The notes: generated by a model not told the origin, from the letters alone. Counted from the stretch's first letter, positions 2,808 through 41,500 are shown. The stretch: 64,000 bases of DNA from Octopus sinensis (GCF_006345805.1 NC_042998.1:3782001-3846000), one strand, 5' to 3'. Program-made: numbers and translations.

Positions 2808-3018
2808 TTAATGTGACAGTCCTGTATGGGAATTACACCACCACTGTTTAGCCCTAGGAAGCATCAAACGCTTCCTGTCGGCTTTGACACATTTCCTGTG
2901 TCCTTATATTTGTGAAGGGGGTGGAGGACACAGGAAATGTCAAAGCCAACAGGAAGCGTTGATGCTTCCTAGGGCTAAACAGCGGTGGTGTAATTCCCAT
3001 ACAGGACTGTCACGTTAA
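2808..3018. repeat. Fold-back inverted repeat, about 95-bp arms, 20-nt loop
   Basis: 2808-2904 is the near-perfect reverse complement of 2925-3018. Confidence 0.95.
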
Positions 3019-3438
3019 GTTGACAGTATACAACCACTCTATCGCTCCACCACCACTCATGTCTCTTTGAAATTTAATATTTCTGATTATATTATTATTA
3101 TAATATAAATATTAATAATCCCTACAATTGTTTCGATTCAAACTCTCTCCCCCTCAACCAACTGCTTTCTCTCATCCTTCTCCATCAGCTATTTCAGTAG
3201 GAGTATTCTGCTGCTCTTCACATCCATGCATCTTTGGTCATATTAGCCCCTATCCACCATTCCCTGCATCCTTTTGCACTAAATCACCATCCCTCAACCC
3301 AATTTTGCAATTGTCACCTACTCTTCCTGACCTCCCCTACTTATCAAGCACTCATCATGTGTGCTTCATTGATTTTATTCATCCCCTCACCCATTGTCAA
3401 GCAATGATGTGGAGAGGGGACAAACACTGACACACAAA

Positions 3439-3608
3439 TACATTATTTACATTTGACGGATATTTGTCCTCATCTTGTTTGCTGTTAACACAATGTTTCA
3501 GCTGATATACCTTCCAGCCTGCATGCAGGCTGGAGGGTATATCAGCTGAAACGCTGTGTTGACAACAAACAAGATGAGGACAAATATCTGTCGAATGTAA
3601 ATAATATA
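3439..3608. repeat. Loop-less palindrome of a Penelope-like terminal sequence, about 85-bp arms
   Basis: Centre gcctgca|tgcaggc at 3523/3524. The arms match the repeat at 57165-57273 and 57779-57880. Confidence 0.9.
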
Positions 3609-3665
3609 CATAATTCCTCATCTCTTAAATACAGAACTGTATTACATAAATAAATATATACATAT

Positions 3666-5640
3666 ATGGAATTTGTATCCTTGTGGTACCAGTGCCGGTG
3701 GCACACAAGAATCCATCCGAACGTGGCCGTAGTCAGTACCGCATCACTGGCCATCGTGCTGTGGGCACATAACAAACACCATCCGGTCGTGGCTGTTTGC
3801 CAGCCTCATCTAGCACCTGTGTCGGTGGCACATAAAAACACCTTCCGAAGACCCGGCAAGACTAGTCAGGCCATAAACCATGGCCCCTACCTGGGACGTA
3901 GTCAGTCCACCTGTGCATACCTTCCTCCTTGTGATACTTGTGAAGGCCTGTTGAGGCAAGTGAAAATCAAAGGCCTGTTGAGGCAAGTGAAAATCAAAAT
4001 CAAAATCAAATCAAAACAAATCAAAATAGATGAACATCAATGGAATCTGTATCTTTGTGGTACCAGTGCCGGTGGCACACCAGAGAAAACCATCCGAAAG
4101 TGGCCGTAGCCAGTACCGCACCGACTGGCCTCCGTTCTGTGGGCACATGACAAACACCATCCGATCGTGGCCGTTCGCCAGCCTCATCTAGCACCTGTGT
4201 CGGTGGCACATAAAAACACCATCCGAAGACCCGGCAAGACTAGTCAGGCCATAACCCATGGCCCCTACCTGGGACGTAGTCAGTCCACCTGTGCATACCT
4301 TCCTTCTTGTGACACTTGTGAAGACCTGTTGAGGCAAGTGAAAATCAAATCAAAACAAATCAAAATAGATGAACATCAATGGAATCTGTATCTTTGTGGT
4401 ACCAGTGCCGGTGGCACACACTTTGTGGTACCAGTGCCGGTGGCACACATGAGAACCATCCGAACGTGGCCGTAGCCAGTTCCGCATCGACCGGCCTCCG
4501 TGCTGTGGGCACGTAACAAACACCATCCGATCATGGCCGTTCGCCAGCCTCATCTGGCACCTGTGTCGGTGGCACATAAAAACACCTTCCGAAGACCCGG
4601 CAAGACTAGTCAGTCCACCTGTGCATACCTCCTTCTTGTGACACTTGTGAAGACCGGTTGAGGCAAGTGAAAATCAAATCAAATCAAATCAAAATAGACA
4701 AAATAGATGAACATCAATGGAATTTGTATCTTGTGGTACCAGTGCCTGTGGCACACAAGAAATCCATCAGTGCCGTAGTCAGTGCGGTGGGCACATGACA
4801 AACACCATCCGATCGTGGCCGTTCGCCAGCCTCATCTAGCACCTGTGTCGGTGGCACATAAAAACACCATCCGAAGACCCGGCAAGACTAGTCAGGCCAT
4901 AACCCATGGCCTCTACCTGGGACGTAGTCAGTCCACCTGTGCATACCTTCCTTCTTGTGACACTTGTGAAGACCTGTTGAGGCAAGTGAAAATCAAATCA
5001 AATCAAATCAAAACAAATCAAAATAGATGAACATCAATGGAATTTGTATCTTTGTGGTACCAGTGCCGGTGGCACGTGGCACATAAGAAAACCATCCGAA
5101 CGTGGCCGTAGCCAGTACCGCACCGACTGGCCTCCGTTCTGTGGGCACATGACAAACACCATCCGATCGTGGCCGTTTGCCAGCCTCATCTGGCACCTGT
5201 GTCGGTGGCACATAAAAACAACCATCTGAGCGTGGCCGTCTGCCAGCCTCGTCTGGCACCTGTGTCGGTGGCACATAAAAACACCATCCGAGCGTGGCCG
5301 TCTGCCAGCCTCGTCTGGCACCTGTGTCGGTGGCACATAAAAAACACCATCCGAGCGTGGCCGTCTGCCAGCCTCGTCTGGCAACTGTGTCGGTGGCACA
5401 TAAAAAACACCATCCGAGCGTGGCCGTAGCCAGCCTCGTCTGGCACCTGTGTCGGTGGCACATAAAATCACCCACTACACTCTCGGAGTGGTTGGCGTTA
5501 GGAAGGGCATCCAGCTGTAGAAACACTGCCAGATCTGACTGGACTGGTGCAGCTTTCGGGCTCCCCAGACCCCAGTTGAACCGTCCAACCCATGCTAGCA
5601 TGGAAAGCGGACGTTAAATGATGATGATGATGATGATGAT
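3666..5640 (+). mobile_element. Tandem array of an RTE LINE 3' UTR (four units of about 320-370 bp plus a terminal unit with the true 3' end and (GAT)n tail)
   Basis: gatgaacatcaatggaat recurs at 4029, 4368, 4706 and 5026. The units match the 3' UTR following the RTE ORF at 11050-11541. Confidence 0.9.
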
Positions 5641-5767
5641 ATATATATATATATTCTTTCAGTAAAACAATTAAGATTCAAGTGAGTTCCAATGAATTCA
5701 CATGAATATGGTACTTAGATGCACCAGAAATCTTTATGGTATTAACCATAAAATAATGTGGGGTGAT

Positions 5768-5949
5768 TATAAACAAGAAAAAAGCAACAAGAATGGATTA
5801 GTTGTTCAGTACAATTGTTTCATACGAAGAACAGATTTATTAAAAACTCCAAAAATTGGAATTTTTGCAGCTTTTAATAAATCTGTTCTTCGTATGAAAC
5901 AATTGTACTGAACAAGTAATCCATTCTTGTTGCTTTTTTCTTGTTTATA
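5768..5949. repeat. Fold-back inverted repeat, about 78-bp arms, 26-nt loop
   Basis: 5768-5845 pairs with 5872-5949 with very few mismatches. Followed by (TA)n. Confidence 0.95.
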
Positions 5950-6269
5950 TATATATTATATATATATATATATATAATATATATATGATGGGCTTCATTC
6001 AGTTTCCATCTACCAAATCCACTCACAAGGCTTTGGTTGGCCTGAGGCTACAGTTGAAGACATTTGCCCAAGGTGCCACACAGTGGGACTGAACCTGGAA
6101 CCATGTGGCTGGGAAGCAAACTTCTTACCACACAGCCACTCCTGTACCTCTTATTATTATTATTATTATATTTGACTTTTGCTTTGTATTTGTACAAGTT
6201 GACTTCAGGTCTCACCCAGAGACCGACCTCAAGAGACAACAGGTTAGAAGTTCATGTTGGTGCTATGCC

Positions 6270-6594
6270 TAGGGTGTCATATATTTGCTTTTGCACATAG
6301 TATTCTTCTAGAGAATGTTTAAAAAAACATAAGAAAATTATGAGTTTGTTTTAAAATTTGAGATTACATAGACAGTGTTTTATGTAGGATATGGGTAGTT
6401 CCAATGAGCACTATCTTTTGAATTTCTGCCATTTTGGAGAAAAATTCAAAAGATAGTGCCCATGGGAATTGCCCATATCCTACACAAAACACTGTCTATG
6501 TAATCTCAAATTTTAAAAGAAACTCATAATTTTCTTCGTTTTCTTAAACATTCTCTTGAACAATACTATGTGCAAAACCAAATATATGACACCC

Positions 6595-6596
<2 letters not shown>
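6270..6596. mobile_element. Head-to-head duplicated 3' end of an R4/Dong-like (RLE) non-LTR element, about 155-bp arms
   Basis: The right arm encodes KIQKIVPMGIAHILHKTLSM* and the left arm (minus) QKIVLIGTTHILHKTLSM*. Both resemble the QKxVLLGTAHILRxxL C-terminus of R4/Dong ORFs. Followed by (TAT)n. Confidence 0.7.
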
Positions 6597-6633
<37 letters not shown>

Positions 6634-6869
6634 CATAGTGAGCTGGGAGAGTCATTAGCACACTAGGCAAAATACTTAGTGGAATTTTGTCCATCTTTAC
6701 ATTCTGAGTTCAAATTTCACTGATGTCGACTTTGCCTTTCATCTTTTCGAGGTTGATAAAACAAGTACCAGTTGAGCACTGGAGTTAATCTATTTGACTT
6801 ATCTGCTCCCCCTAAATTGCTGGTCTTGTACTAAAAATTTGAAACCATTATTATTATCATTATTATTAC

Positions 6870-6900
<31 letters not shown>

Positions 6901-8125
6901 AACATTACTACTAGTATAATTGTGACATATACCATACTGCTTTTGGAGGTTTTCAACAAAATGGAAATGGAGCAATTTTATAGGTGCTAGACAATGTTAC
7001 CATTTCCTTCTAAAAATTTCTCTTTCAAGAAAGCAGAGTTTCAAAGATTATTTTGGTTAGAAAGCCATGGATCCATGTATAAAAGTCAGGTGAAAGCTTG
7101 ATATATGAGAAATCTGATGCATAACCTAGTCCTGAAGAAACACTGTTTTCCAATGAGAAACGGTGATTAGCAATGAAAGTAGATCAGTAAAATTAATCAG
7201 AATATGACAAAAAGGTGTTTTAGAAAATTTATACTTTTTGATCTGAGACTATAATCTTGAATTATGCATGAAAAGTAAGTAAAAGGAAAATGATAAAATT
7301 AAAGAAAAATATACATGAGAAATACTACAGGAAAATTGGTACAGCAACAATTTTTGAAAACATCGCATCACACACTGACAATTTTCTACAGAAATAATAC
7401 CTGTGATAGCAAAATCAAATAATATGCAACATATGTTTAGTAATATAAGACTATATATGTGTGTATATGAATGTGTATGTAACTGTGTGAGTGTGGTAAC
7501 TTGCTTGTTGTATGCATGCGTTTGTATATCTACACGGATGTTTTGAAGTGTGGATATAGGTTTTATGTAATTTCATATAAGAGAATGCTAATAAGAACTC
7601 CAGTAGCAGCTCGTTTGCGGGGAGCTCAGCGATAATAATTTGGAATCAATGCAGGTGTTGTTACTGACAATCAGACTGAAGCATTAGTGGTTAGCTTCTA
7701 TGTAACAAGCAGGTAGACTGGAAATAAATCAAGGAACAAACTCTCTTGATGGTTAAAATTAGCATTTATCAAAAGAATAGCAATCACAATGTCTCCAACA
7801 AAACTGTATGAGCTGTGCATATGTTTATACGTGGTTGTATGGTCTGTGATGTTTTTATGTATAATGGTATGCTATATATGTATGTGTTGCCTTCATCCAT
7901 CCATCCAACCATCAGAAACAGCTTTTCTTTTAGATGTATTGAAAATTTAAACCTGTTCTATTTTTATCCTTTTTATCAAGATTGTTTCATATTTTGCAGT
8001 TTATATTGAATAGTATACTTGCCAAATCCAGCCTCAGCCTTTATGGTATTGACTTCAGGATGAAGTGACATTAGAATATATTGCTGTCTCTTTGAAGTAG
8101 GTGATAAGTGTAGGCGTTATTACTA

Positions 8126-8156
<31 letters not shown>

Positions 8157-8341
8157 CATGTATGTATAGGTATTGGCATGGCTGTATCATTAAGAATCTC
8201 ACTATGCAACCACATATGTTTGGTTCTGCAGTGTAATAACTTCAGCCAAGTGCCTTCAGCTATAGCCATGGGCCAGCCAGTGCCTTGTCGGTGAATTTAG
8301 TTCATGGAAACTGTGTGGAAGCCTGTTGTGTGTGTGTATTC

Positions 8342-8374
<33 letters not shown>

Positions 8375-8442
8375 TACTGGAGTAAGCACATAAATGTGAA
8401 ACAAGGTGGAAAAAAGAGTACTCAAATACCAGAGGTAGAATA

Positions 8443-8564
8443 ATATGCTTTATTTAAAAGCAGCAGAAATATAACAAAAGCTGTTACTCAGTTTCATGTT
8501 CCCATTTGGAATGTAAAACTCTTAGTAACAGCTTTTGTTATATTTCTACTGCTTTTAAATAAAG

Positions 8565-8569
<5 letters not shown>
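8443..8569. repeat. Fold-back inverted repeat, 46-bp arms, 35-nt loop
   Basis: 8443-8488 pairs with 8524-8569. Followed by (TA)n. Confidence 0.9.
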
Positions 8570-8600
<31 letters not shown>

Positions 8601-8984
8601 TATATATTCATATACATATATGGTTAGCCCACTATACATATAACAGTATTAATAAAATAGATTTTATTGGGTATGACATATCTTTCGACCCATTCTGGGT
8701 TTCTTTGGGTACATTAATAAAAGGTCTCACTAGAGATTTCCTGAATCGGCTTACGTACCACTATACATCCAACAAATTTTCGAGAATGAGTAAAAACAGA
8801 GAAAAATTATCGAAACACAAAACATTCAAATATGAACATGGAAATTATACATTCTAGTTTAGAGAAAATGACGTAATGAACCTTTGCTGGTGTAACTGTT
8901 AAGAGAAAGAAAAGGAAGAAGAGATTGAAATGAAGATAATGCTTAGACAAAATTTTCTTTTGTGTTTGTGCCTAGATGCACATG

Positions 8985-9570
8985 TACATACACACACACA
9001 CACACATATATATGCTTATGCGCTCACACATGCATATCCAAGTATATGGACATGTACATACAACCAGATACACACACAAGTGCACACGTATGGACGAATA
9101 CATATGAATAGGAACTCATATATGCAAGTACAAACTTGTATATATACATAAATATACATACATAGCATAGATAAATATGTGCACATATTTGTACATAAAG
9201 CAAGATACAAATGTCTGTGCAAAGTTTGACACACATACACACATACATGTTAATACACTTGCATATACACATAAGTAAATATATAAACACATATACATAT
9301 ACACATACACATGTATGCATATATACACATAAACACACCTGTGTACACATATGCACAGATCCACACTAATATATACACACGCACCTACAAAAAATGCAAG
9401 TGCACACATTTGAATATGTAGACAAATATATCTATATATATGTACATATACACATATGCACGCACATACACACACATATATACATATATACACACATACA
9501 CGTACACATATATGCATATACACACATATACATATATATATATGCATACATATGCATATATATACATATA
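8985..9570. repeat. Degenerate (CA)/(TA) low-complexity tract
   Basis: Alternating purine-pyrimidine ATAC/ACAC/ATAT runs that generate the spurious Y/I/H/T ORFs. Confidence 0.9.
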
Positions 9571-9796
9571 TGGATCTAGATTGCAAGATCATATCACAAA
9601 TACAAGTTATTCAAATATAGGTCCTCAAGTTCATGTGTACTAAGAGTTGTGGGTGCCATGTGTACATCAGACAGACAATATAAACTGCAAAATATGAAAC
9701 AATCTTGATAGAAAGGATAAAAATAGAACAGGTTTAAATTTTCAATACATCTAAAAGAAAAGCTGTTTCTGATGGATGGATAAAGGCAACACATGC

Positions 9797-9828
<32 letters not shown>

Positions 9829-9878
9829 TATATATATCAAACTGACTCGGGAAATTTCTAGTGAGACATTTTATTGAT

Positions 9879-9920
9879 GTACCTGAAGAGACCTAGAATG
9901 GGTCGAAACATGTTTTGTAT
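9879..9920 (+). ncRNA. Degenerate minimal type-I hammerhead ribozyme motif (PLE-associated); inverted second copy at 8661-8715
   Basis: gtac-CTGAAGA-gacct.agaat.gggtc-GAAA-catgt. The minus copy reads gtac-CCAAAGA-aaccc.agaat.gggtc-GAAA-gatatgTC-atac. Confidence 0.55.
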
Positions 9921-10866
9921 CCAATAAAATCTTTAACTCATTCCATCTATCTATATATTATCTTTCGCTCTCTCTTTCTCTATCTGTCTGTCTATCTATC
10001 TATCTATCTATTTATCTATACATATATATATATACACACACATTTATACACATATACATAACAAAGTGTACTGTATTATGTACCCATTATAGTCTATCTT
10101 AACAATTGGTTTCACACTGGATGTTAAACTGGATGTTAAATAACAGCCTGGTTGTGTAACACTGTGTTTTTCAGAGCTGATAGTTATACTGTTGAATTAC
10201 ATAATCCTATTTATACCACGGCTGGAAGAAAATGGAGTAGGCTCAGCTGGAGCATCTTTGACCATAGATCTACTGGTTGTATAGGAATAATGATTTTGCT
10301 CATTACCGCATCAAAGTCATCAAGTGCTTTAACTTTACAGCCATTGTACTACTAAAGTATATTTGTTGCTAATAATTTATTAAAAATTGATATAAACAAA
10401 GCAAAAGATTAATCAATGAATTTAATTAAACAATGAATGCAGATTATTATATTAAATCACTGAAGGAATGGGTAAGTGTAAAGAAGCCATAATTTTAATC
10501 ACAATCAATTTCATCTGTTCAATTAATGAGGTGAGAATTATGGATTGGCACTAAGTTCATGGCATATTGTGTCTGTGACCCAGCTTTGATTCTTGGCTGG
10601 AATGATTTCATTGAAACAAATATCAGTATTGTAACTTATTTTCCTCTTCTTTTCAAAGAATTCAGTAAGAATTATCTTTTATTGAAGGAAATTGCTATCT
10701 CATTCTCCACTCTTCCTTTTCCTCTGTTGCTCTGTTACTTCCTCTTTTTCTCTTTATACATGTGTGTGTGTGTATAAATATGTTGGTGTATTCATGTGTG
10801 TGTGTATGTGTGCATAAATGTATATATATGTATATATTTATGCATATATGTAATATATATGTGTGC

Positions 10867-11541
10867 TAGTTGTGTGAAAAAGTGCCACACCCTAGCAGTT
10901 GAGGGAACCTGTGGAAAAGGTAAACCCAAGAAAACCTGGGACGAGGTGGTGAAGCATGACCTTCGAACTTTAGGTCTCACCGAGGAAATGACTAGAGACC
11001 GAGACCTTTGGAAGTATGGTGTGTGTGAGAAGACCCGCCAGGACAAGTGAGACCATAACCTGTGGCCTCTACCTGGGATGTAGCCAGTCCACTTATGCAT
11101 ACCTTTCCTTCTTGGGACACAAAACTCTACTTGCAAAGACCTGTTGAAGCAAGTGAAAATCAAAATCGAAATTGATCAACATCAATACCCATCCGAACGT
11201 GGCCGTTGCCAGCGCTGCCCCGACTGGCCTCCGTGCCGGTGGCACGTAAAAAGCACCATCCGATCGAGGCCATTGCCAGCCTTGCCTGGCCTCCGTGCCG
11301 GTGGCACGTAAGAAGCACCATCCAATCATGGACGTTTGCCAGCCTTGTCTGGCACCTGTGCTGGTGGAATGTAAAAAGCACCCACTACACTCTCGGAGTG
11401 GTTAATGTTAGGAAGGGCATCCAGCTGTAGAAACATTGCTAAATCAGACTGGGCCTGGTGCAGTCTTCTGGCTTCCCAGACCCCAGTTGAACTGTCCAAC
11501 CCATACTAGCATGGAAAGCGGACGCTAAACAATGATGATGT
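10867..11541 (+). mobile_element. 5'-truncated RTE-clade LINE (ORF C-terminus + 3' UTR + (GAT)n)
   Basis: [51 protein letters not shown]...* followed by a structured UTR and a gatgatg tail. Confidence 0.9.
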
Positions 11542-11687: not shown

Positions 11688-12099
11688 CCTCTGTCTTTCC
11701 TTCTTTCCTGAGCATCCAATAATACTATATTTGTTCCACGTCCTCGCGTTGTTGTGTTTTTTTGTGCTTTCTTCTTTGGATTAACTTTATATATATATAT
11801 ATATATACATACACACGCACTCATGTGTGCATGTGTATGAATACGGGATATATCTGTACAGATGCTGTTGATTATAAAATACAAATATTTCGTGCTCTGT
11901 AATTTATCACACATCGAGAAGATGACTTGAATAAGTCAAGTTTAGAATAAAACAGAAATGATTTTGTTTCAAAACATTTGCATTTCATAACCAAACTTAG
12001 TTTGATATCATATATTTGAGATATCTTATTGAATTTGCTATTTTTTTTTTATATTCTAAACACTTTTATTTAAAAATGTTTTACAAAATTTTCTTCAAG

Positions 12100-12319
12100 G
12101 TGGTGGGAAGGCCCATGGCAACATTGCTCTGTAACCTGTGGCTCAGGGGTGCAACGGCGAACAGTGATGTGTGTGAGAAGCTTTGGTGACAAAGAACAAA
12201 TGGCACTGGACGATTCAGCATGTATTGGTCAGAAGAAGCCAAATCATGAGAAAGAATGTCACCATACAGATGTCCTTTGTCCTAAAGTCAGTCGATGGAT
12301 TAGTAGTCCATGGGATGAT
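12100..12319 (+). CDS. ADAMTS7: ADAMTS7/12-like exon: TSP1 repeat A plus start of repeat B ([16 protein letters not shown]...WISSPWDD)
   Basis: Acceptor ttttcttcaag|G, donor GAT|gtaagt. 220 nt, phase 2 to phase 0. Overlaps ORF 12149..12340. Confidence 0.92.
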
Positions 12320-12994
12320 GTAAGTATATCTTATTTTTGACTTCAAGAAAGAATTTAGAAATAGTTGCATGGATGTGTATAGATGAGTCCACTGTGGAGC
12401 CTTCTTCTAGCATTGTTTTTTTCTTTTAATGCTGTAATCCTTATTTGATATTAATTTGGTTATATAATTATATTACCCCAGGACTTATTCTTTGTAAGCC
12501 TAGTACTTATTCTATCGGTCTCTTTTGCTGAACTGCTAAGTTACAGTGACGTAGACATACCAGCATCGGTTGTCAAGCAATGTTGGGTGGACAAACACGG
12601 ACACACAAACACACACACACACATATATATACATATATACGACAGGCTTCTTTCTGTTTCTGTCTACCAAATCCACTCAAAAGGCTTTGGTCAGCCTGAA
12701 GCTATATTATATAGGATTATATAAGGTTATATAAGGTTAATTTGGTTATATAAGGAATAAATTATTTTAATGAATAATATCAGTTCAATTTTCCTTCTGT
12801 TAAATAATTTATAAATTAGTATTGGTTAAAGAAACAGGGTTAATGTCTGTGTCAGAGATTTTCCATAAAGTTCTTAACTTTTTATTAGTTTTTGAATATA
12901 GAAATCTATAATTTTATAACAAGAAGAAAGGTATATTTTTCCAACATGTAAATACTGAACAGTATATATATAAAGGATAAAATTTGCTGACACA

Positions 12995-14491: not shown

Positions 14492-15892
14492 TACATATAT
14501 ACGACAGGCTTCTTTCTGTTTCTGTCTACCAAATCCACTCAAAAGGCTTTGGTCAACCTGAAGCTATAGTAGAAGACACTTGCCCAAGGTGCCACGCAGT
14601 GGGACTGAACCCGGAACCATGTGGTTCGTAAACAAGCTACTTACCACACAGCCACTCCTATGCCTATAGAAAGATATATTGATCTTTGGTAAAATAATGT
14701 AAATATTATGGCTTAATCACATTTTGATATTTTTCTTAATAAAAATGATGGTGGTGGTGGTGGTTGTGGCAGTTGTGTTTGGTGGGGAAATTTGCAACCT
14801 AGTATCATGAACTTTCTGCAGCCCTAGTTTTAATGCTGATTTTTGTTAAAAACTGTGTATTATGCATGAAATTTTATAGTACAAAAATATATGACAAATA
14901 TTGTTACAATTCTTTTCTTTGTATAATTTCAGACTTGCACGAATAATCCATGTGGCTGGAAAAAACGAGAGGTTGTTTGTGAAGATCCAATTATTGGATG
15001 TCACAATGCTACAAAATTAGCCACAAGTGTTCGTTGCTCTAACATGATATGTGGACACTGGTCTGTCAGTGAATGGTCTTTGGTAGGTCAACTAAAAAAA
15101 CTCAACTTTATTTTGAAACTTATTACTATAGTGGAAAAGGCTGACAGTAAAGTACCTGTGTTTAATTTTAAACTTCTCAGTTCTGTATTCAAATCTTATT
15201 AGAATTAGTTTCACCTGTAATAAATCTAGAGGTTTATTAAAGTAAATAAACATTAAAAAACTGGTGTTAGTTCAGTCACATGAAACATATTCTAAAAAAA
15301 TTAACCTGGTAGAGAACCAAAAGAAATGTTAGATTTGAGATATTTTTCTTTCGTTTCAATTTGAGTAACAATAATAATATTTCTTGCTGCTTCTTAATAT
15401 CTATTTTTTTTGTGTCATTCTCGGTTTCTATTTTTGGAAGATATAAAATAATGTAAACAAGCCTGTATTTACAGCTGTTGATTCTAACTTTGAGAGAATT
15501 TCACAGATTAAAATTACTTTTAGCATATCCTAAAAAAAAAAACGAACTAAAAAAAAGTGTTCTTGTTTAATTCTATCATTCTGTGCTTTTTTTTAATTAA
15601 ATTCTTTTATTCTCAGTGTTCCAGATCATGTGATGGAGGCTTTCACTATCGAGATGTTACATGTGTTGGTATGGAATTATGTGATCTTGATCTAAAACCA
15701 AGCTCCAAGAAGCATTGTAATATACAAGAATGTACAGAAATGTTGCCCCCCACCATAAATAAATTAAACTCCGATTCACAATCTTCATCCTCTTCATCGC
15801 CACAGCCATCATCCCCAATGACAACTACTGTACCAACAACAGCAGCAAGAACCACCACAACAACAACAAGGCCGACAACAACAACAAGGCCG

Positions 15893-15926
<34 letters not shown>

Positions 15927-16969
15927 CGATGACGACAACGACAACAACAACATCATCATCATCCCCTTCATCTACTACAACATTACCACCAACAGCAACC
16001 ACTATAAAAACAACCTCAACAGTGCGACCAAATCTAATTGAACCTACTCTGACAAGAAAAACCACTCTTAGCGTTCCAAGGAAAACCATCCCTAAAACAT
16101 CTGCAAAAACTACAGCATCGACTACCAGCAGCATTGCTACCTCACCAGTTGCTTCCACAACAAGGCCAGTCACTAGACGCAGTAAGACCAAACATATTTT
16201 ATCAACAACTCCATCAATTTTGAAGACAACTTTGTCAAATGCAAATAATGGCAAACAGAGAGAACAGCATCCAGGCCACAGGAGCGATGTCAGTGATAAA
16301 CACACCGATAATTTCATTGGCAATGATACCAAAGAAGACCAGAAGAACAAAACAAATAAAACTCATTCGGATGATCTGCCTTCTGTTCCTACTTCCAGAC
16401 CCACAAAAGAAGCTGGTAAAAATAAATCTGTTACAAGTCATGTATCACATGATAATAACAGAACCAAAGCCAAAGCACCAACTAAGAACAAACCACCTCC
16501 ATCTCGTTATCAATGGACTTTCAGAAAATGGACTCTTGTAAGTATAACAACCATTATTAACATCACATTTGCATATTTGATTAGCATTGTATATTCAAAC
16601 AAAAAAAAAACGACTCATGAAGCTTTAAAAAATATCTGGATCAAAATTCTTTCATCATCATCATTGTTCGACCGTGGTCGAGACAATGGAATTTACCATG
16701 CTACGCCAGACTTCACGGTCCATCATGGCATTACGGAGGTCCTGTTGCTGGATGCCTGTATCCCTGGAGATTACATCAGGGTAGGAGAGTGTGTGCCCTC
16801 TGGTATTGCGAGTAGATGGCTCATATAGTAAAATTCTTTACTATATGAGTATCTAGTTTGAATATTGATGTGTGTGTGAGTGCATGCATGTGTATGTACT
16901 GTATGTATGTATATATGAGATTTTAAAATATTTGCTAAATACTTTGAAATTTGAGCTGTTACTATAATG

Positions 16970-20251: not shown

Positions 20252-20285
<34 letters not shown>

Positions 20286-27871: not shown

Positions 27872-30800
27872 ATATATATATATATGTGTGTATATATATA
27901 TATATGTATGTATGTAAACCAGCATCATATAACAAGAACCCAGTACACTCTGTAAAGTGGTTGGCATTTAAAAGGGCATCCAGCCATAGAAACCTTGCTA
28001 AAACAGATGACTGGAGCCTGGTGCATCCCTCCAGCTTTCCAGCTCCTTTCAAACTGGGCAATGCATGCCAACATGGAAAATAGACGTTAAAGAATGATGA
28101 TGATGATACTGTTGATCTAATTTTTTTTTTCACCATGCAAGACACTTTCTTTGTTTACTTCAATCTATATGATGAATATATACATTTTACTCACTTTAAA
28201 TTAAAATTTTTATTATTAATTAAAACATAGTTGTAAGATAATACTTTCGAAAATACTGTCTAGACCCAATATTTTGTAACAATATTGAACATTATGGAAT
28301 CTAAGTTAATAGAAAAAGATATATAAATAATAATTCAATTAATAAAATGAAAAATATTGTAATTTGGAAATTTGGAATATGTTCTGAAACATTTTTTGTA
28401 TTTGTATTTTATTCAATTTTTGTATTTGTATTTTATTCAAATTTCAGTGTGACTTCCAGCATCCACAACAAAAGTGTGGCCACAGCAACAGAAGCAGAGT
28501 TGTGTACTGTGTTGACAGACGTTCACGCCGCTCTCCAATCGTACCAAGCTACAAATGTAACACTTTGACTAAACCACCTGAATTAAAGGCATGTTACACT
28601 CCTTGTAAAGAATGGATGACTGCAAGCTGGACAAAGGTAAGATAAATAACTATTTGTCGCATTGTGCATACATAGTAACTGGCTCTATGCAAAATGTTGA
28701 TTTTACAGACACACACATGCAATATATATTCAAATTTTATGATGAAAATAACAACACAGAAGCATGGAAAACGAATATTAAATTACTATGTGTGTGTGTG
28801 TGTGTGTGTGTATACACAGCCAAGTAGATTTGGCCCTATGTTGAACTACAATATATAAGCTCCAACAAACAATGAAAATAAAATGTAGTTATTAGTTTAA
28901 TGTTCAAGGAAATATGTAGTGGAAGTGTTCCTGGCATTTTGGGCTTATGCTCATCTTCACAAAGTTTCATATATTGAAGGAAGAAGTGCATTTATGTGTA
29001 TGTGCAAAGTGGTTGGCATTAGGAAAGGCATCCATGCACAAAAACCATGCCAAAACTAACATTGGAGTTCATCATAGCTCTGTAGCTCATAAGATGCTAT
29101 CAAACTATCCAGCCCATGTCAGCATGGGAAACGAATATTAAACGATGATGATGATGATGTGTGTATGTGTGTGTGTATACTCAACCAAATAGATTTGGCC
29201 CTATGTTGAACTACAATATATAACTTCCAACAAACAATGAAAAATGGTTTCAAAATTGTGTCGTATCACATAACAGTTTTAGGTCGTCAGTAATTTTTTT
29301 TATTTGATTATCAATGATTGCTTTAGCAGGTGCAGCATATACATTTAACCATTATTCAAACATAATAATTTACTCATGATTTAAACATAGATTGAAACAC
29401 TCTGATTCACAAAAATAGTGGCAAACATGGTTTAATGCTTTCCAACATTCTTTTGTTTCAATGTTTACCCTTAATTAAATAAGGCGACTCAAGTAAAATG
29501 TAGACACATTGTAGCATCGAAAATGGTTGGTGTAAAGAATCGAGGGCTATCGTGAAAGCAAAGAGTGGCCATTTTGCATTGTAAATATATGTAAAATATT
29601 GTCAATAAATATAACAATGAACCTGTAAAGTTTCATTAACCAAAACCTAAAACTTTATTTTATGGTATAATGGATAAATATATAAACTGCACCCAGTAAA
29701 CACAATATATTCAACTGTAATTTCCTTGTTAATAAGAAGTATATTTATAGGTATTAGCTTATAACACCACACACACGCACACACAAATGCCTACTGCATG
29801 CACGCACACACACTCTCACACAGACACATTAAGTTACATGTTATTATGTATCAATCAATGAATGTTTCAATAGATGAACATGTGATTTTCCTATATATTT
29901 ATTTGATATTCTTGGCACTAACTATGTAATATGAAATATGAACTGGGAAGCAACACAAGAGCTGCTGCCAGGTCAGAACTGATAGTTTGAGAGCAAGAGT
30001 CAAGCATCCTTGGGCACGTGGTTATTGCACTTAACACACACATACATGGTGGCATACACACAGAAACATAGAGAGAATATTTAGAAATCTTTATATGTAA
30101 ATGAATGTTCATCTGATTGACTTCAACACCATAAATTTTATTTATATATTTATTTATTTATTGCTTGGTTTTCTTTCAACATATTTTGTATTCTAACAGC
30201 TATACTTTATAATTCCATATTCAACCTGACCAGCAAAGAATATAGGGAATACACCCTTTCTTTCTTATCTTTCTGTATATAAGCATGTATACATTCACAC
30301 ATACATACATACATACATACATATTTCAGTCCCACTGCATGGCACCTTGGGCAAGTGTCTTCTTCTATGTCTCAGGTCGACCAAAGCCTTGAGTGGATTT
30401 TGTTGCTGGAAACTGAAAAGAGAGACCTGTTATAGATGTGTGTGTGTGTGTGTGTGTGTATCTCTTTTTTGGTGGTGTTTGTTCACCACCACCTCTTGAC
30501 AACTGGTGCTGTAATGAAATGGTTTGCCGTGAGGTCAGGCTTAAAAGAAAGAAAAAAAAAGTACTAGAGTTGATTATTTTTTTGACTAGAGTTCTTCAGG
30601 GCACTGCTTCAGCATAGCAACAGTCTAATGATTGTAACAAATAAAAAATAAAATTCATACATACATACATACAAATGTGTCTGTAAGCAGAGTTTAGTGT
30701 CCAATGAAGGAAAGGTATGAATAAGAGGGTTGGTTACCCCCCTAGCATAGGCCACGACTTTATATATATACACACATACATCATCATCATCATCACGCTA

Positions 30801-32248
30801 AACGATGATGATGATGATGATGATGTATGTGTGTATATATATAAAGTCGTGGCCTATGCTAGGGGGGTAACCAACCCTCTTATTCATACCTTTCCTTCAT
30901 TGGACACTAAACTCTGCTTACGAACACCTGTTGAGGCAAGTGAAATCAAATTTGATGACTGGCATCCGTGCTAGTGGAGCGCTAAGAGCACCATCCGAGC
31001 GTGATCATTGCCAGAGCGGCTAACTGGCTTCCATGCTGGTGGCACATAAAAACCACCATTCGAGCGTGATCATTACCAGTGTCGCCTTACTGGCACGTGA
31101 AAAAAACATTCAAGTGAGGTCGTTGCCAGTGCCGCTGGACTGGCTCCTGTGCAGGTGGCACGTAAAAATCACCATTTGAGTGTGGCCATTGCCAGTATCA
31201 CCTGACTAGCCCTCGTGCCGGTGGCACGTAAAAGCACCCTCTACACTCTCAGCGTGGATGGCATTAGGAAAGGCATCCAGCTGTAGAAACTCTGCCAGAT
31301 CAAGATTGGAGTCTGGTGCAGCCATCTGGTTCACCAGATCTCAGTCAAGTCATCCAACCCTTGCTAGCATGGAAAGCGGACGTTAAACGATGATGATGGT
31401 ATATATATATACACACACACACACATATACACACACACATGTGTATGTGCATGTGTATATATATGCATGCATAACTGTATGTATATGTTGCTTTAAGAAA
31501 AATACAGTTAGTCACTATATTTTCAAATATAAGAGAATTAAACTTTCAAAATTTATGAGTTTTAGATTAAGAATAATGAATAATAATTTTCTGCATTGAT
31601 GTAAAATACACAAATCTATAAGAAAGGGTTGTGTTTATTTGTACTGTTACACCAGTGTGTGATTAGTACTTACTTATTCGTGGAGGCGCAATGGCCCAGT
31701 GGTTAGGGCAGCGGACTCACGGTCGTAGGATCGCGGTTTCGATTCCCAGACCGGGCGTTGTGAGTGTTTATTGAGCGAAAACACCTAAAAGCTTCACAAT
31801 GATGAAGGGCATCGCTGTTACACTTCCAGGAGGGAAGGGTCTTCCTTTGATTCTGACATGCAATGTCTGTGCAAGACCCTGCCTCAGTAAAGCTGGACTC
31901 ATGAGTCATCTTCGTAGTCATAAAACGAGACAGATGAGTGACAACCTGGCCACTGGTGGTGGTGTAACACACCATACTAATCATATCTGTCGGGCATGTG
32001 TAATAGAGTGTAATTCGGCAAGAGGACTTAAATGACCTGCAAAGGTACATGAAGCCCAGTTACAACTACAGCCGGCTATTACCGGTAAAGGTTTTAGCTG
32101 CCAATTCTGTACAAGACATTGTAGATCTTTAGCTGGGCTAAAAAGTCACATTCGGTCATAGCACCGGTAACAGTTAAGCTTCGTGCAATGGCCATACTCG
32201 ATAACGAGGGGGGCAGCTATAATAATAATGCATGTATGCACGTATGTA

Positions 32249-34293: not shown

Positions 34294-34326
<33 letters not shown>

Positions 34327-37300
34327 AGTGTATATAAATATACAGACGATAGGCTTCTTTCAGTTCCTGTCTACTGTATCCACTTACAAGGCTTTGGTTG
34401 GCCAAGAAGACATTTTCCCACGGGGTCCACATAGTTGGACGGAACAAAAGAGCACACAGTGGAGAAGAATGCTTCTCAAGCACACAACCATGCTAATACA
34501 CACACACACACACACGCAACACACACACACACACGCCACACACACACACACACACGCACGCACACACGCGCACGCAACACACACACACACACGCACGCAC
34601 ACACACACACGCACGCACACACACACCACACGCACTCACACATACGCACACGCACGCACACACACACGCACACACACACGCACCACACACACACACACAC
34701 GCACGCAACACACACACACACACGCCGCACACACACACACACACACGCACGCACACACACACACACCACACACGCACACACACACACGCACGCACGCACA
34801 CACCACACACACACGCACACACACACACACTCACGCACACACACACACACACGCACGCACACCACACACACACACACACACACACCCACACACGCACGCA
34901 CACACACACACGCACGCACACAACACACACACGCACGCACGCACACACACACACACACACGCACGCAACACACACACACAACGCACGCACACACACACAC
35001 GCACGCACACACACACACACACACGCACTCACACGTACACACACGCACGCACACACACACACGCACGCACACACACACACACACATGCACAGTGTATGTA
35101 TACAAAACTGCAAGTATCAAAAGAAAGATGTATACATATCTTTTATCATACTCCTGAACACAAGAACATGAGATGCTGAAATGCATTACTCTTTCTACTC
35201 CTTTACTTATTTCAGTCACTTGACTGCGGCCATGCTGGAGCACCACCTTTTTGTTGAGCAAATCGACCCCAGGACTTATTCTTTGTAAGCCTAGTACTTA
35301 TTCTATCGGTCTGTTTTGCCGAACCGCTAAGTTGCGTGGACGTACACACACCAGCATCAGTTGTCAAGCGATATTGGGGGACAGACACACAAACACACAC
35401 ACACATATATATATACATATATACGACAGGCTTCTTTCAGTTTCCGTCTACCAAATCCACTCACAAGGCTTTGGTCAGCCCGAGGCTATAGTAGAAGACA
35501 CTTGCCCAAGGTGCCACGCAGTGGGACTGAACCCAGAACCATGTGGTTGGTAAGCAAGCCACTTACCACACTCATCATTATCATCAACATCGTCATCATC
35601 ATTTAATGTCCACTTTCCATCCGTGCATAAGTTAGATGGTTTCAGTGGAACTGGTAAGCTGAAGTGCTCTGCCAGGTTCCACTCTGATTTGGCATGGTTT
35701 CTATGGCTGGATGCCCTTTCTAATACCAACCACCCCGAGAGTGTAATGGGTGCTTTTTACATGCATCTGGCATGAGTACCATTTACCTGATGCCTGTAAA
35801 AGCCATGACAAGGATTCATGGTTGCCATTTACATGACTCTGGCAACGACCACAACTGCAGCTTTGCTTGGCTTGAAGAGTCTTCTAAAGCACAGCATATC
35901 ACCAAGGTCTCAGTCACTTGTCATCACCTCCCAACATTCAAAGATAATGCTTCACCCCCTCATCCCATGTCTTCTTGGGTCTACCTCTTCTACAGGTTCC
36001 CTCCACAGTTAACAATCAGCACTATTTTATCTCAAAGAGAAAAAATTTCTTTATAAATTTTATGGGTAAAAACACATCAGCTTCCACTGACATAAACAGA
36101 CCATCAGATGGAATATTTCAGCATGATTTCACCTCTTCAGTAGAAGATATTCTGCTTGATGTGCTTTTACATGCAAAGTCTAGTCTATAGAACCAATATT
36201 GTTCCCTGCAAGACAAAGTACTGCAGTGAATACTTTTCAGGTTCCAGTGTAGAGGAGCATGTCAAAACTGTGTTTTACTCTTTATTTTGATTCCTACTGC
36301 ATTCATCATCATCATCATCATCATCGTTTAACGTCCGTTTTCCATGCTAGCATGGGTTGGACGGTTTGACCGGGGTCTGGGAAACCAGGCGGCTGTGCCA
36401 GGCTCCAGTCTGATCTGGCAGTGTCTCCACAGCTTGATGCCCTTCTTAATGCCAACCACTCCGAGAGTGTAGTGGGTGCTTTTTACATGCCACCAGCACA
36501 GGGGCCAGAGGAGGCTGGCAAGCAGCCATGATCGGTTGGTGCTTTTTATGTGTCACTGACATGGATGCCAGTCGGGCTACATTCGGATGGTACTTTTTAT
36601 GTGCCACCGGCACGGGCATCACAACTACAAATTCCATTTGATTTTTATTTTGATGTTGATGTACTTGATTCAATAGGTCTCCTCAAGCACAACGGGTCAC
36701 CCTATGCTCCAAGGTTAGCACAGCAGGCTGTCCTGCGAGCCATGAGCTCACTTCATTTGTCGGGTCTTTGCATTTCTCTCAGGGTGCTTACACTCTGTCG
36801 TGCATGCATACTGACATTACCCATCCAGTGGATCATGCTAGCTTCATTTCTTTCAAGCCTACGCATGTCCATTGTGAACATAAATCAACTCCAGCTTAAC
36901 AAGCTTCAGCACACAGCAATTGATATATTGTTTTCTGCTTTCGATATAAGAGCAAAAGTTCTGGTTTCGCTCCAAATGACCAAGGCAATGTCTGCTACTG
37001 AAAAGGCAAAATCACACCAAAACACCATATCTGGTGGTCTTCTGATGCCACTTGGAGTTTGGTTTGATGTATTTTTTCACACTAGATCTATAGAGGAAAA
37101 ATTTTTTAATGTCCAAGACATAGTAAGTGTCTCATGTACTAGCATAAAGGAGCATCTTGAAACAAAGTACACATCTTTATATATAGTTAAAAAAGATTCA
37201 GGTAAAAACCTTGCAAAGCTTATCCATAATTATTGACTTCCAGATGTTATCATACAGTGAAAATTCTCTTGCTACACCAGGAATTCTATAACATCCACAA

Positions 37301-38354
37301 AGTTAATATAAATAGATATATAATACTAAATAAATTGAACAACATTCTTTATTTAAAATCTTTACAATTGTTTAGACACATTTTAACAGACATAATACAT
37401 TGGTGAGATGATATATATGATATTGTATAATCCCTATTACATTAAAAGTGTAAGATATGCTTCTTTGATGGATGACTGAGATTACAAAATATGTTATTCA
37501 TATCATCTTACCAATATACTATGAGTGTAAAAATGTGTTGAAACAATTGTAGCGATTTTAAATAATGTTGCTCAATCCATTTCCTATGATTTAGCATTGA
37601 TATATGTATATAAATATTTGTTTGTTGAAGCTATAAACACATCTTTATGTATATGTACATATATCACCGTGACCGTGATATATGGATATATGTACATATA
37701 CATAAAGATGTGTTTATAGCTTCAACAAACAAATATTTATATACATATATCAATAGTCAGACTATCAGATGTTGCTACACATCGCTGGTCACAATGCGCT
37801 TTGCATTGTTTTAGCCTTTAAATGATGCCACCCTGCTGGCTAAGCGAGCAGGCCAACAGATGAAAGAGTGAAAGAAAGTTGTGGCAAAAGAGTACAGCAG
37901 GGATCGCCCCCCCCCCCTGCTGGAGCCTCGTGGAACTTTAGGTGTTTTCACTCAATAAACACTCACAACATCCGGTCTGGAAATCGAAACCACGATCCTA
38001 CAAACACGAGTCTGCTGGGCCATTGCACCTCCACATATATATATATATATATATATATATCTTGTGACCGACCAGACCATCAGATGTTGGTACACTTCGC
38101 TGGTCACAATGCGTTCGCATTGTTTTAGCCTTTGAATGACGCCACCTCGCTGGCTAAGCAAGCAGACCAACAGAAGAAAGAGTGAGAGGAAGGGTGGTGA
38201 AGGAGTACAGCAGGGATCACCAGCCCCTGCCGGAGCCTCGTGGAGCTTTTAGGTGTTTTCGCTCAATAAACACACACAACGCCCGGTCTGGGAATTGAAA
38301 CCGCGATCCTACGACCGCGAGTCTGCTGCCCTAACCACTGGGCCATTGCGCCTC

Positions 38355-38397
<43 letters not shown>

Positions 38398-38551
38398 TTG
38401 TTTGTTGAAGTTATAAATACATTTTCATATATATATGCACACACATGAGGGGTGTATGAAAAGTTTTGAGCCTTGAAGGTCTTGTACCTTTATTAGAAGT
38501 CTTGTACCATGTTTGTTTTTTTTGAGGCTTAAGACTTTTCATACACCCCTC

Positions 38552-38585
<34 letters not shown>

Positions 38586-41500
38586 CACAGTTGATTCATC
38601 AGCATAAATGGACTTTGGGACATCAGGTGTTTTGATATAGTTGTAGTTCATCAGTCATTGAACACCTGACTAACGAATCTAAAAGAGTTTGTGGCTGTTC
38701 TTTATAACCAACCAATATCTGCCAACCAATACTATATCATTATATGCATGAGGAACAGTGAGAATCATATTTATTTGCATATTCATTCTTAATGCATTCT
38801 GACAGATTCAAACTTGAATATGCTAATTGCTGTTGTGTTTCCCTCTTGGAGAACAACTTCACCTTTAAGATAAATCAGTGGTCTTAACACATTAGATTTA
38901 TGAGTGTGAGGAGATTTTGGGACACTTAGTGGTTCGACATCGTTGTGTATTGTCAGACAAAGTCACCCTGGACCAATGAATCTCCATTGTTCAATAACCT
39001 AGAGAGTCATTTGAAATTATAAGTGGCTTAATACAAAATTGCTTAAAAGTTTCCAAGTTGTGAATTTAACCAGATTTGCATAGATGAATTAGTTTCAAAT
39101 ATATAGCAGTATGTTCATGAGTGTGTTAAATTATGTATTCAAAATTATGAAATTATGTAACTAATATTAACTTCCATCTGTAGAGTAGGAAACTGAAAAT
39201 ACAGTTGTAATAAATGGGAATCAAACTAGACATCTCCCTAATTAGATAGAAGCTCGCAAGTTCTGTGACCTAAGGTGCTGAGGTGATTAACTTTGTAAAT
39301 TGAAGATGACTTATGAGTTATGTTTACGAGGATGTCAATGTTCAGTAAATAATAGCGATTGACATACTTTAGCCTAATTGAAATGCATAATTTTGGTTTT
39401 GTCATATTGGTGTTTCCACACTCATTATCAACCTCATACTACCCAAATACTGGACAAAGCTCTCCTACTATAGAAATGTTAAAGAGTTTTATGGGAAACA
39501 AACCACCAGAGGAAATCGAAGGTTACACTTTTGGCTTTAACATCAGATATAAATTATTTGAGATTTGTAGGTACGTGATATTTCGTTATACAAACCCTAG
39601 GAATTTCAACTGTGTTTCATGGTCTGCTACCACAACAGCTCCTTTATAGGATCCAGTTAGCTAAAGACATCATCACAAGGAACCATGTCTGGTTTCGGCC
39701 CCTACTCCTCTACCATTTTGACGTGTTGGGCCCCCCCACTTTTGGAGGTGTTTTCAGCTCTGGTGTTGGGTGCATGTCTTCCTTCTTCTGTTCCCTGGCC
39801 TCTTCGATGCAGCGTGAACGAGTGTCACCGGGTGACTGACTGTCTTGTCAAATTTCCCTTTAAATACCTGCTGCTAGGCTCCAGCAGGCAGCTCCAGCTA
39901 GTTGTCACATGACACTGTCTCAACTTTAACTTATATACTATAAGGTATACTAAATGTTTTTATAAGTCAGTACCACATTCCGTTGCATCTGCAGTGCTCT
40001 TAGATTATTTTGTTAAGGTTATTTCTACAGATATTCTATAGAATATCAACCTGCACTGATTTTTGCTACAATGTTAAGTATCAAGATGTCAGATGTAAAC
40101 AGACAATGTGGTTGAAGGCAAAATTGGGTAGTGTTTGCATACCAACCCCAGTAATGTATTTAATATGTAAATAGGTATATCCAATAACTGTATGTGGTGG
40201 CTATATAAGCAATGTGTTCGGAGGCAATATTGAGTTTGATGAGTGCTGATCAAGGGGCAAAAATCCCGAAATATGGCATATACACTCATTGCCCACTTTT
40301 GTCTTCGATCACATCTGTTTACATCTGATGTCTCAATAAGAAACGTGGTAGCAAAAATCAGTGCAGGCTGTAAGTTCTATAGAATATCTGTAGAAATAAC
40401 CATAACAGAATAATGTAAAAGCACTGCAGATGCAACGGAATGTGGTACTGACTTATTAGTATACCTTATAGTATATAGGGTTTGTATAATGAAATATCAC
40501 GTACCTACAAATCTCAAATAATTTATATCTGATGTTAAAGCCAAAAGCGTAACCTCTGATTTCCTCTGGTGGTTTGTTTCCCATAAAACTCCTTAACATT
40601 TCTATTGTAGGAGAGTTTTGTCCAGTATTTGGGTAGTATGAGGTCGATAATGAGTGTGGAAACACCAATATGACAAAACCAAAATTAGAATTTCTGTAGA
40701 AATAACCTTAACAAAATAAATTATCTGATTCTCTCATATCACACATAAACATACATATGAAAAGCTGCTGAAGATTACATTTTGGTGTCTGCAAGTCTAT
40801 CTGGTCTCACTAGTACCAATGCTGTGTTCATTTCCTTTTATCAGAGCGAAGTTCAGCTTTATTTATCCTTTTTTTCTCTGGAATTTTCCATGCAAATCTC
40901 TTGTAAAAATGAATAGATGATGGACAGAAAGCAAAGTAAGATGCTTTTCATTGATTAAGCATAACTGAGTAATATTCAACATTGTCAGCTAAATTAGTCT
41001 TTTCCATAACCTAGCAGAAATTGAATACCAACTTATTCTTTTCAGAAAAGAGAATTCCTTTCCTAAATATAGACGAGCAACTAGTATTTACACTGGTTAC
41101 AAAGTAGAATGTCTTAATAATTTTTTCTGTAAAGAAGCAAATCTTACATGCAGTGATCAATGTTTAACATAATGATTGTTGCTGAAGAAATATTTTGAGT
41201 AATTCACTGTAATTTTACAAGCAAGTGTGATTACATGAAAACTTTCTCTAATTTGATTAAGAATGGGGACTTTTTTTCTTTTCTATGGATGCTAAATTTA
41301 CCAAAACATATTAAGCACCATCTCTTAAATTGTTAGACGAATAATAACTCTCAGCTTGTCAATCTTGAAGAATACAGAATTGCTACAATCTCTAATTCCA
41401 AGCTGAAAGATGTACCTTGTGTTGTATGACTATGATCCTCTACATCTTTTTTTTCTTACTTGCTTCGGTCATTGATTTGTAGCCATGCTGGGGCATCACC

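Follow-up and report, generated by a model that had tools for sequence, protein, structure and literature searches.

Short-loop inverted duplications among AT microsatellites of an Octopus sinensis intronic region: possible insertion scars of truncated retroelement copies

We describe a cluster of inverted duplications, i.e., potential RNA hairpins, within 64,000 nt of one strand of the Octopus sinensis genome (GCF_006345805.1 NC_042998.1:3782001-3846000; hereafter the window, with positions counted from its first letter), and weigh how they may have arisen. The + strand carries TSP1-repeat exons at ~12074-12337, 14927-15199, 15557-16828, 28388-28642, 44609-44905 and 58512-58886, which indicate a putative ADAMTS-like gene. 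When the six exon peptides were used in a protein search, the best relatives were ADAMTS-like and just 28-42% identical, so that the gene seems to be absent from the annotated proteins searched. In one of its exons there is a mucin-like stretch of considerable length that is rich in Thr; a protein search with this exon was dominated by low complexity and gave no hits, and an exact look-up of the exon ORF found no entry. The hairpins lie in introns and, if the ADAMTS-like gene is expressed, are transcribed in sense.

A seed-and-extend scan and a self-BLAST of the window recovered all inverted duplications listed in the initial annotation, with coordinates agreeing within a few bases. The short-loop set comprises 2808-3018 (arms 2808-2903 / 2926-3018, loop ~22 nt, 3.2% substitution divergence between arms), 3439-3608 (3439-3523 / 3524-3608, loop 0, 9.4%), 5768-5949 (5768-5857 / 5860-5949, loop 2 nt, 3.3%), 6270-6596 (6270-6425 / 6442-6596, loop 16 nt, 7.1%), 8443-8569 (8443-8488 / 8524-8569, loop 35 nt, 4.3%), 26019-26304 (138-nt arms 26019-26156 / 26167-26304, loop 10 nt, 6.5%), 30677-30927 (119-nt arms 30677-30795 / 30809-30927, 113 nt of them identical, loop 13 nt, 1.7%) and 37596-37754 (70-nt arms 37596-37665 / 37685-37754, loop 19 nt, 0%). 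Below, each hairpin is referred to by its start position. A larger palindrome with ~416-nt arms lies at 39380-40141 / 40279-40694; a repeat of 332 bp (39600-39931) was later inserted into its left arm, hence its true loop is 137 nt. Hairpin arms thus measure 46-416 nt and loops 0-35 nt, with the one of 137 nt. In addition, we find a 100-nt terminal inversion (20161-20260) that closes a tandem array, a spaced inverted pair of ~130 nt (7873-8008 and 9676-9803, 92-98% identity, 1667 nt apart) and three older hairpins with 83-85% identity (37349-37565, 38427-38571, 46025-46164).

Divergence between arms ranges from 0% (37596) to 9.4% (3439), which implies events of differing age. To call the duplications near-perfect is therefore an overstatement. 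Over all hairpins, the arms differ by 73 substitutions (50 transitions and 23 transversions) and few gaps; for 3439, 8/8 differences are transitions. Given that almost only substitutions and few indels are observed, the differences are taken to be genuine mutations rather than read noise.

Short-loop inverted repeats are absent from 20/20 dinucleotide-preserving shuffles, while the same criterion yields 12 hairpins in the real sequence. A fairer null model preserves the repeats: the 50 inverted high-scoring segment pairs (HSPs) in the 5-20 kb spacing bin amount to ~0.33 per 100 nt of spacing, such that ~0.33 pairs with a gap <100 nt are predicted. We observe 9, and these are also the most similar pairs of the window. 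A block-permutation control gave no information because palindromes survive within the 150-nt blocks. For comparison, 49 kb from three Octopus vulgaris loci (L001-L003) were used, i.e., ~113 kb of sequence were compared in total. The O. vulgaris sample holds two short-loop palindromes, which gives a density of ~1 per 24 kb versus ~1 per 7 kb in the window.

Arm ends abut AT microsatellites at 5949, 6596, 8569, 9803 and 20260, i.e., the five abutments to (TA)n or (TAT)n claimed before are borne out. Using a strict microsatellite definition, 4/11 ends abut versus 0.44 expected, and 0.1% of 5000 random placements reached 4, so that the link is significant. An imperfect (TAT)n also adjoins 2808-3018 on its left, which the initial annotation had missed. 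The arm/microsatellite junctions share 2-6 nt (TATA, ATAT, TTAA/TAA, TATATA); such short A/T matches beside AT repeats are weak evidence.

Beyond mere adjacency, several hairpins show a common layout, in which the two arms and their loop, extended on one side by 66-113 nt, stand between two microsatellites of the same type. The unit at 5639-5986 consists of (TA)n 5639-5655, a 112-nt extension (5656-5767), the arms of hairpin 5768 with outer end TATA, and (TA)n 5944-5986. Likewise, the unit at 6151-6633 runs from (TTA)n 6151-6173 via a 96-nt extension (6174-6269) and the arms to (TAT)n 6595-6633, and the unit at 8342-8621 from (AT)n 8342-8368 via a 66-nt extension (8377-8442) and arms with outer end ATAT to (TA)n 8565-8621. 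Hairpin 2808 is embedded in a mirror-image unit (2790-3115), where a (TAT/ATT)n-like tract (2790-2807) is followed by the arms, a 70-nt extension and (ATT)n 3089-3115. An older form of the layout is found at 38376-38583 with hairpin 38427-38571 between two (TA)n tracts. Since the same microsatellite type flanks both sides, the arrangement suggests for four or five cases that extension and hairpin entered an AT microsatellite together, as a single insertion that split it. In the initial annotation, (TA)n was considered a site of breaks; with the same tract type on both sides of four or five hairpins, it looks mainly like the target instead. The region 5639-6902 forms a chain of four (TA)n/(TAT)n-bounded units of 288, 164, 421 and 236 nt, which looks as if successive insertions had landed in the microsatellite tails of earlier ones.

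The window contains 16 microsatellite-bounded units of 60-500 nt, 3-5 of which bear a hairpin. By comparison, the 28 loci of three abundant families of short interspersed elements (SINEs) yield just one short-loop inverted pair. The effect is tied to microsatellite-embedded units and does not look like a process shared by all retroelements. Nor do the 43-46 microsatellite tracts of the window show hairpins at their many borders adjoining resident DNA.

Hairpin 2808 is composed of two copies of one repeat family, here named E2808. The inverted copy (2808-2925, - strand) comprises the left arm and the ~22-nt loop and is without the last 70 nt of the family. The direct copy (2926-3088, + strand) is 5'-truncated and comprises the right arm plus a 70-nt 3' extension; it ends ...ATATTTCTGAT beside (ATT)n 3089-3115. 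A non-palindromic relative is present in O. vulgaris locus L002, to which window positions 2925-3087 align (L002 7781-7612) with 82% identity; this copy, too, ends ...ATATTTCTGAT, and (TA)n comes next. The left arm (window 2828-2920) aligns to L002 7703-7799 in opposite sense and the match runs through 17 nt of the loop, i.e., the loop is the 5' continuation of E2808 in the orientation of the inverted arm. Sequence unique to one copy is thus found on both sides: ~22 nt of 5' family sequence in the inverted copy and 70 nt of 3' sequence in the direct one. Since each arm has family sequence that the other is missing, neither was simply copied from the other and a longer family template served both. 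From this alignment, a simple local fold-back appears excluded for hairpin 2808, and its geometry would fit twin or dual (two-strand) priming. The arms differ by 3.2% from each other versus 14-18% from the O. vulgaris copy, which argues for a single origin. The inverted copy ends at TTAA next to (TTA)n. We also considered a Helitron, as both copies end CTGA|T, and did not adopt it: near the 3' end there is just a weak 5-bp AT-rich stem. In O. vulgaris (OX597841.1), the E2808 copy and its (TA)n sit exactly between two head-to-head copies of an abundant SINE (L002 7213-8229), whose arms of ~380 nt are 83-95% identical and 261 nt apart.

Hairpin 3439 is built from a truncated SINE copy (family SINE-X). 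The inverted copy (3439-3523, - strand) repeats the 5'-most 85 nt of the direct copy (3524-3640, + strand), which is truncated at the palindrome centre and has a 32-nt 3' extension (3609-3640). This extension is absent from the inverted arm and common to the direct copy and 57129-57164. Two reference copies of SINE-X (57129-57345, - strand, and 57776-57887, + strand) continue 5' of, and hence through, the palindrome centre. We tested whether the 57-kb locus supports reading 3439-3608 as a miniature inverted-repeat transposable element (MITE), and discarded this: when aligned, the locus resolves into two separate copies that differ in their truncation and surround a SINE inserted later, i.e., not one palindromic unit. 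The divergence between the arms (9.4%) is about that to other SINE-X copies (10-12%), and duplication and insertion are thus of the same age.

The two most similar palindromes look different. Each arm of 30677 combines a microsatellite piece of 39 nt with the initial 75-80 nt of a copy of the 3' region of a long interspersed element (LINE); this copy is 5'-truncated and runs on the + strand to at least 31376. Longer copies of this LINE region (10867-11382 and 18533-19020) keep homology 195 nt further upstream of the truncation. The microsatellite within the arms is non-family sequence and lies between the element end and the palindrome centre. While the arms are nearly identical, the LINE copy differs by 19-32% from other family copies in the window. 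For 37596, the identical arms are AT-rich non-element sequence directly upstream of a SINE dimer (37758-38328), and the loop holds an extra copy of GATATATG. Full local templating of the inverted copy fits 30677 and 37596 and is contradicted for 2808, while the other hairpins agree with either route. Later, post-insertional snap-back at the DNA level fits 30677 and 37596 better than copying during insertion.

Using other family copies as reference, orientation can be read in three cases (2808, 3439, 30677), and in 3/3 of them the inverted copy is at the 5'-truncated end of the element. A related picture is given by the tandem array at 19271-20282, where 2.8 copies of a 320-bp unit (98% identity) are followed by the inverted 100-nt piece 20161-20260. 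This piece overlaps the direct end by ~14 nt, extends 85 nt further along the 320-bp unit, and meets (TA)n at a TATATAA internal to that unit, which is close to the classical picture of twin priming. More complex is the arrangement 7873-9932 around (AT)n 9797-9837. It includes the spaced pair 7873-8008 / 9676-9803 as well as a second pair (8640-8747, - strand, and 9844-9932, + strand) with a hammerhead-like motif. For 26019-26304, no other copy was found in the available sequence, and its right arm meets a degenerate TA-rich stretch without microsatellite context. The same holds for palindrome 39380, i.e., it has neither microsatellite context nor relatives in the available sequence. Its arms diverge by 4.1% over the outer 220 nt versus 11.7% over the inner 200 nt, and a segment of the inner arm is repeated in a subterminal piece of 34 nt (40686-40719).

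To explain these observations, we propose that most hairpins are insertion scars, i.e., short 5'-truncated copies of non-autonomous retroelements that inserted into AT microsatellites together with an inverted 5'-proximal copy made in the same event. We give this explanation roughly an even chance. First, a nick in one strand of the microsatellite would prime copying from the 3' end of the element as far as the truncation point, which would produce the direct arm and its 3' extension. Second, the 3' end of the other microsatellite strand would pair with an internal A/T-rich site of the template (TATA, ATAT, TTAA) and prime a second cDNA (complementary DNA) towards the 5' end, i.e., the inverted arm. 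Being primed at such a site, the inverted arm would end in microhomology with the tract. Finally, joining of the two cDNA ends would create a head-to-head overlap of 14-160 nt with a loop of 0-35 nt. The process would correspond to twin or dual priming with unusually long overlap. Alternatively, a reverse transcriptase (RT) snapping back onto its own cDNA would give the same outcome wherever the loop is without extra family sequence. RNA templating, the enzyme involved and any effect on transcripts are inferred. The retro-integration origin put forward in the initial annotation fits the anatomy of five or six cases, with 30677 and 37596 better explained by DNA-level snap-back.

Several points weigh against the proposed insertion scars. 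Hairpin 2808 alone separates template-level copying from local fold-back, and a later 22-nt deletion at the palindrome centre could mimic its evidence. The hairpin overlaps of 46-160 nt are far beyond classical twin priming with its internal deletion (PMC2837659). Target-site duplications are unreadable within microsatellites. In the searches of the window, the short units have no RT nearby, no Pfam support and no tRNA-like head. The arms of 30677 hold 39 nt of non-family microsatellite, which RNA templating does not predict, and both 26019 and 39380 are without microsatellite context and known relatives. Copy counts refer to the ~113 kb compared rather than to the genome.

What 30677 and 37596 indicate for themselves may be extended to the whole set, i.e., all hairpins might be post-insertional. 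Here, a fork would stall or a break occur at or near a fragile AT microsatellite, and DNA-level fold-back by replication template switching or polymerase-theta-type snap-back would copy 50-400 nt in reverse complement before microhomology-mediated rejoining. The 30677 arms are as expected in this case, being nearly identical and including 39 nt of non-element microsatellite in a copy that is 19-32% diverged from its family, and so are the identical, AT-rich, non-element arms of 37596 with an extra GATATATG in the loop as from repeated rounds of snap-back. Moreover, the significant (TA)n link is in line with fragile tracts, and the microhomology at the microsatellite junctions fits equally well. 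On the other hand, each arm of 2808 has family sequence that the other lacks, such that a further deletion would be needed, and in all 3 readable cases it is the 5' end of the element that carries the inverted copy. Furthermore, hairpins are found in inserted units flanked by the same microsatellite and not at the other borders of the 43-46 tracts, and if a broken (TA)n end had primed the fold-back, one would expect the tract at the centre of the palindrome, not at its outer end. For the set as a whole, we thus regard a DNA-level origin as possible but somewhat doubtful.

It is quite unlikely that each hairpin instead moved as a whole, as a copy of a mobile element that is itself palindromic, i.e., a MITE or a DNA transposon of foldback type. 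Long arms combined with a subterminal repeat are a look known from foldback elements, and 39380-40720 has both, i.e., long arms and the 34-nt repeat. The missing microsatellite context of 26019 and 39380 would also agree with such an element, and copy number is known just within the ~113 kb. However, the O. vulgaris copy of E2808 is non-palindromic, the SINE-X copies at 57 kb pass through the palindrome centre, no target-site duplications beyond trivial TA are seen, and the one-sided extensions are left unexplained. Neither the window nor the 49 kb of O. vulgaris holds a second copy of any entire hairpin, which is not decisive for 5768, 6270, 8443, 26019 and 39380. The view that the hairpins are not one MITE family thus stands: their arms are mutually unrelated and two hairpins have relatives that are non-palindromic at that point. 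Finally, although the perfect 37596 and the nearly perfect 30677 are what a long-read or assembly artefact might look like, it is extremely improbable that the palindromes are artefacts, given that 7/9 hairpins show 3-9% arm divergence by substitutions with transition bias and few indels, that the palindromes are internal and short, and that similar structures occur in a separately sampled O. vulgaris assembly.

The view that the short units underlying the proposed insertion scars are retroelements is based on how they are truncated and on their microsatellite 3' ends rather than on coding sequence. A Pfam search of 20 open reading frames (ORFs) of the window revealed only TSP1_ADAMTS and weak zinc-finger matches and nothing that supports the R4/Dong, RTE or Penelope-like labels given before, and ARAGORN detected no tRNA-like SINE heads in the window. 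Among named relatives of a CR1/jockey-like RT fragment (17093-17545, - strand), the best are from Octopus vulgaris (76-79% identity); further RT matches included bird CR1. Using Rfam at gathering thresholds, no match was obtained in the window or the three O. vulgaris loci. Below the threshold, a type I hammerhead motif is located at 9877-9920 (+ strand; 28.2 bits versus 34 for gathering, with E = 0.009 across the entire window) within a ~100-nt element that starts at (AT)n 9797-9837, and a decayed inverted copy (8675-8705, - strand) is found 1.1 kb upstream. The pair looks like remnants of Penelope-like pseudo-LTRs (long terminal repeats). The hairpin arms and the two tandem units (320 bp and 240 bp) were found to carry no hammerhead, and the idea that these tandem units are retrozymes was dropped. 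Rfam models of microRNA (miRNA) precursors gave E-values of 1e-7 to 1e-13 at 2551-2621, 6351-6516, 26117-26208, 30758-30846 and 37624-37724, all far below the gathering scores. We set these matches on hairpins and TA/CA repeats aside as generic hairpin or AT-repeat matches.

Repeats of the window are shared with two of the O. vulgaris loci at identities of up to 90-98%, which marks the window as Octopus-like DNA. In L002 19050-19325, (TA)n is followed by a 135-nt arm, loop, arm, a 65-nt extension and an AT-rich tract, i.e., the layout of the window, and the architecture therefore recurs elsewhere in Octopus. In L001, the respective family forms a 240-bp tandem array and also occurs as inverted pieces flanked by long (AT)n tracts. 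Pattern scans of metagenome contigs of the Joint Genome Institute (JGI) with the cores of SINE-X and the abundant SINE returned 0 matches. A protein search with concatenated peptides across the hairpins gave no hits either, which is uninformative as to copy number because the collection evidently lacks non-coding octopus ORFs.

A few further repeats were recorded on the way. L001 (CATOCA020000001.1) contains at 6488-7409 a palindrome with 460-nt arms (90% identical) that is unrelated to the window hairpins; direct repeats lie within it, and its centre is a small, perfect hairpin. The 3' region of a LINE-like element in the window carries a 62-66-bp tandem repeat (GGCACATAAAAAACACCATCC...) at 3666-4617, 5144-5474, 11224-11382, 18338-18699 and 31091-31233; it is found in both orientations and, at 3666-4617, nested within a 378-bp higher-order repeat. 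Head-to-tail SINE dimers at 23064-23431, 45003-45367 and 37758-38328 (periods of 184, 182 and 311 nt; 85-90% identity) are partial tandems, not single insertions. Lastly, an imperfect (AC)n tract of ~590 bp (34498-35085) gives rise to spurious long ORFs on both strands.

Why the origin of such hairpins matters follows from what is reported for octopus. Among the animals compared, it shows the strongest hyper-editing signal, and an exceptionally high proportion of its loci can fold into long, almost perfect local double-stranded RNA (dsRNA); a mechanism for the origin of these loci is not given (PMC5625713). A large miRNA expansion is documented as well (PMC9699675). The predicted RNA folds of the window hairpins reach -69 to -220 kcal/mol (z = -15 to -40), such that very stable dsRNA would form in + strand pre-mRNA, and the hairpins would represent the type of substrate meant in the octopus dsRNA and hyper-editing work. 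Were insertion-coupled inverted copying common genome-wide, it would provide a concrete source of octopus dsRNA substrates and extend twin-priming-type integration, with long overlaps, to microsatellite-targeting invertebrate elements; if restricted to a local cluster, it would be an ordinary detail of repeat annotation. The strongest version, i.e., that octopus retroelements targeting AT microsatellites routinely make overlapping inverted 5' copies, that each such intronic insertion seeds a long near-perfect dsRNA hairpin, and that the process is a main source of local dsRNA potential and hyper-editing load as well as a supply of raw hairpins for small RNAs, is an unlikely one. In any case, such hairpins can mislead repeat finders and miRNA predictors and could pass for miRNA genes.

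Models of twin priming, and of dual priming by two RNAs, have been published (PMC2837659). About 30% of lineage-specific L1 insertions are 5'-inverted in a microhomology-dependent manner (PMC2912911), which is similar to the frequency of 3-5/16 among the microsatellite-embedded units. As in L1, two oppositely oriented segments of one element are observed with the inverted one on the 5' side (2808, 3439, 30677), and the second target strand may prime internally via microhomology. In classical twin priming, the inverted segment derives from upstream of the direct one with an internal deletion between both (PMC2837659). The octopus segments, in contrast, overlap by 14 nt (20161-20260) or 46-160 nt (hairpins) without internal deletion, and hairpins form as a consequence; the long overlaps call for either a second template molecule or strand displacement. 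Furthermore, the octopus targets are AT microsatellites and the elements are short and non-autonomous. Microsatellite-specific non-LTR elements as such are known (PMC4640811).

ADAR-substrate palindromes, e.g., a Harbinger palindrome in frog, share the long, nearly perfect local dsRNA potential. Unlike these, the octopus hairpins are not one palindromic family, and the study cited above (PMC5625713) describes substrates, not their origin. Templated inserts of polymerase theta and fold-back inversions have in common with our hairpins an inverted adjacent copy and junction microhomology, which fits 37596 and 30677. Typical polymerase-theta inserts span tens of bases, whereas the octopus arms measure 46-416 nt and 2808 is not locally templatable.

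Insertions of Penelope-like elements take the form of partial tandems with heavy 5' truncation, often beside an inverted copy and with a one-sided tail of 30-40 bp, and are biased to microsatellites, namely (TA)n in Naiads (PMC8557442), which are reported as old remnants in cephalopods. The octopus units resemble them in their heavy 5' truncation, partial tandems, adjacent inverted copy and (TA)n-type targets, in the 32-nt one-sided extension of 3439, and in the type I hammerhead motif (9877-9920) that adjoins (AT)n outside the hairpins. They differ in that both Penelope-like copies keep the 3' end while the inverted arm of 2808 is without its last 70 nt, and in their extensions of mostly 66-113 nt. 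In addition, hairpin arms and tandem units have no hammerhead, no Penelope-like ORF was seen, and Pfam gave no match to a Penelope-type RT with GIY-YIG endonuclease in the arms. Given the overly long overlaps and the inverted arm of 2808 without 3' end, the strict definitions of twin priming and of Penelope-like insertion both fail. Given such close published precedents, the proposed hairpin process would be a variant with long overlaps rather than something new.

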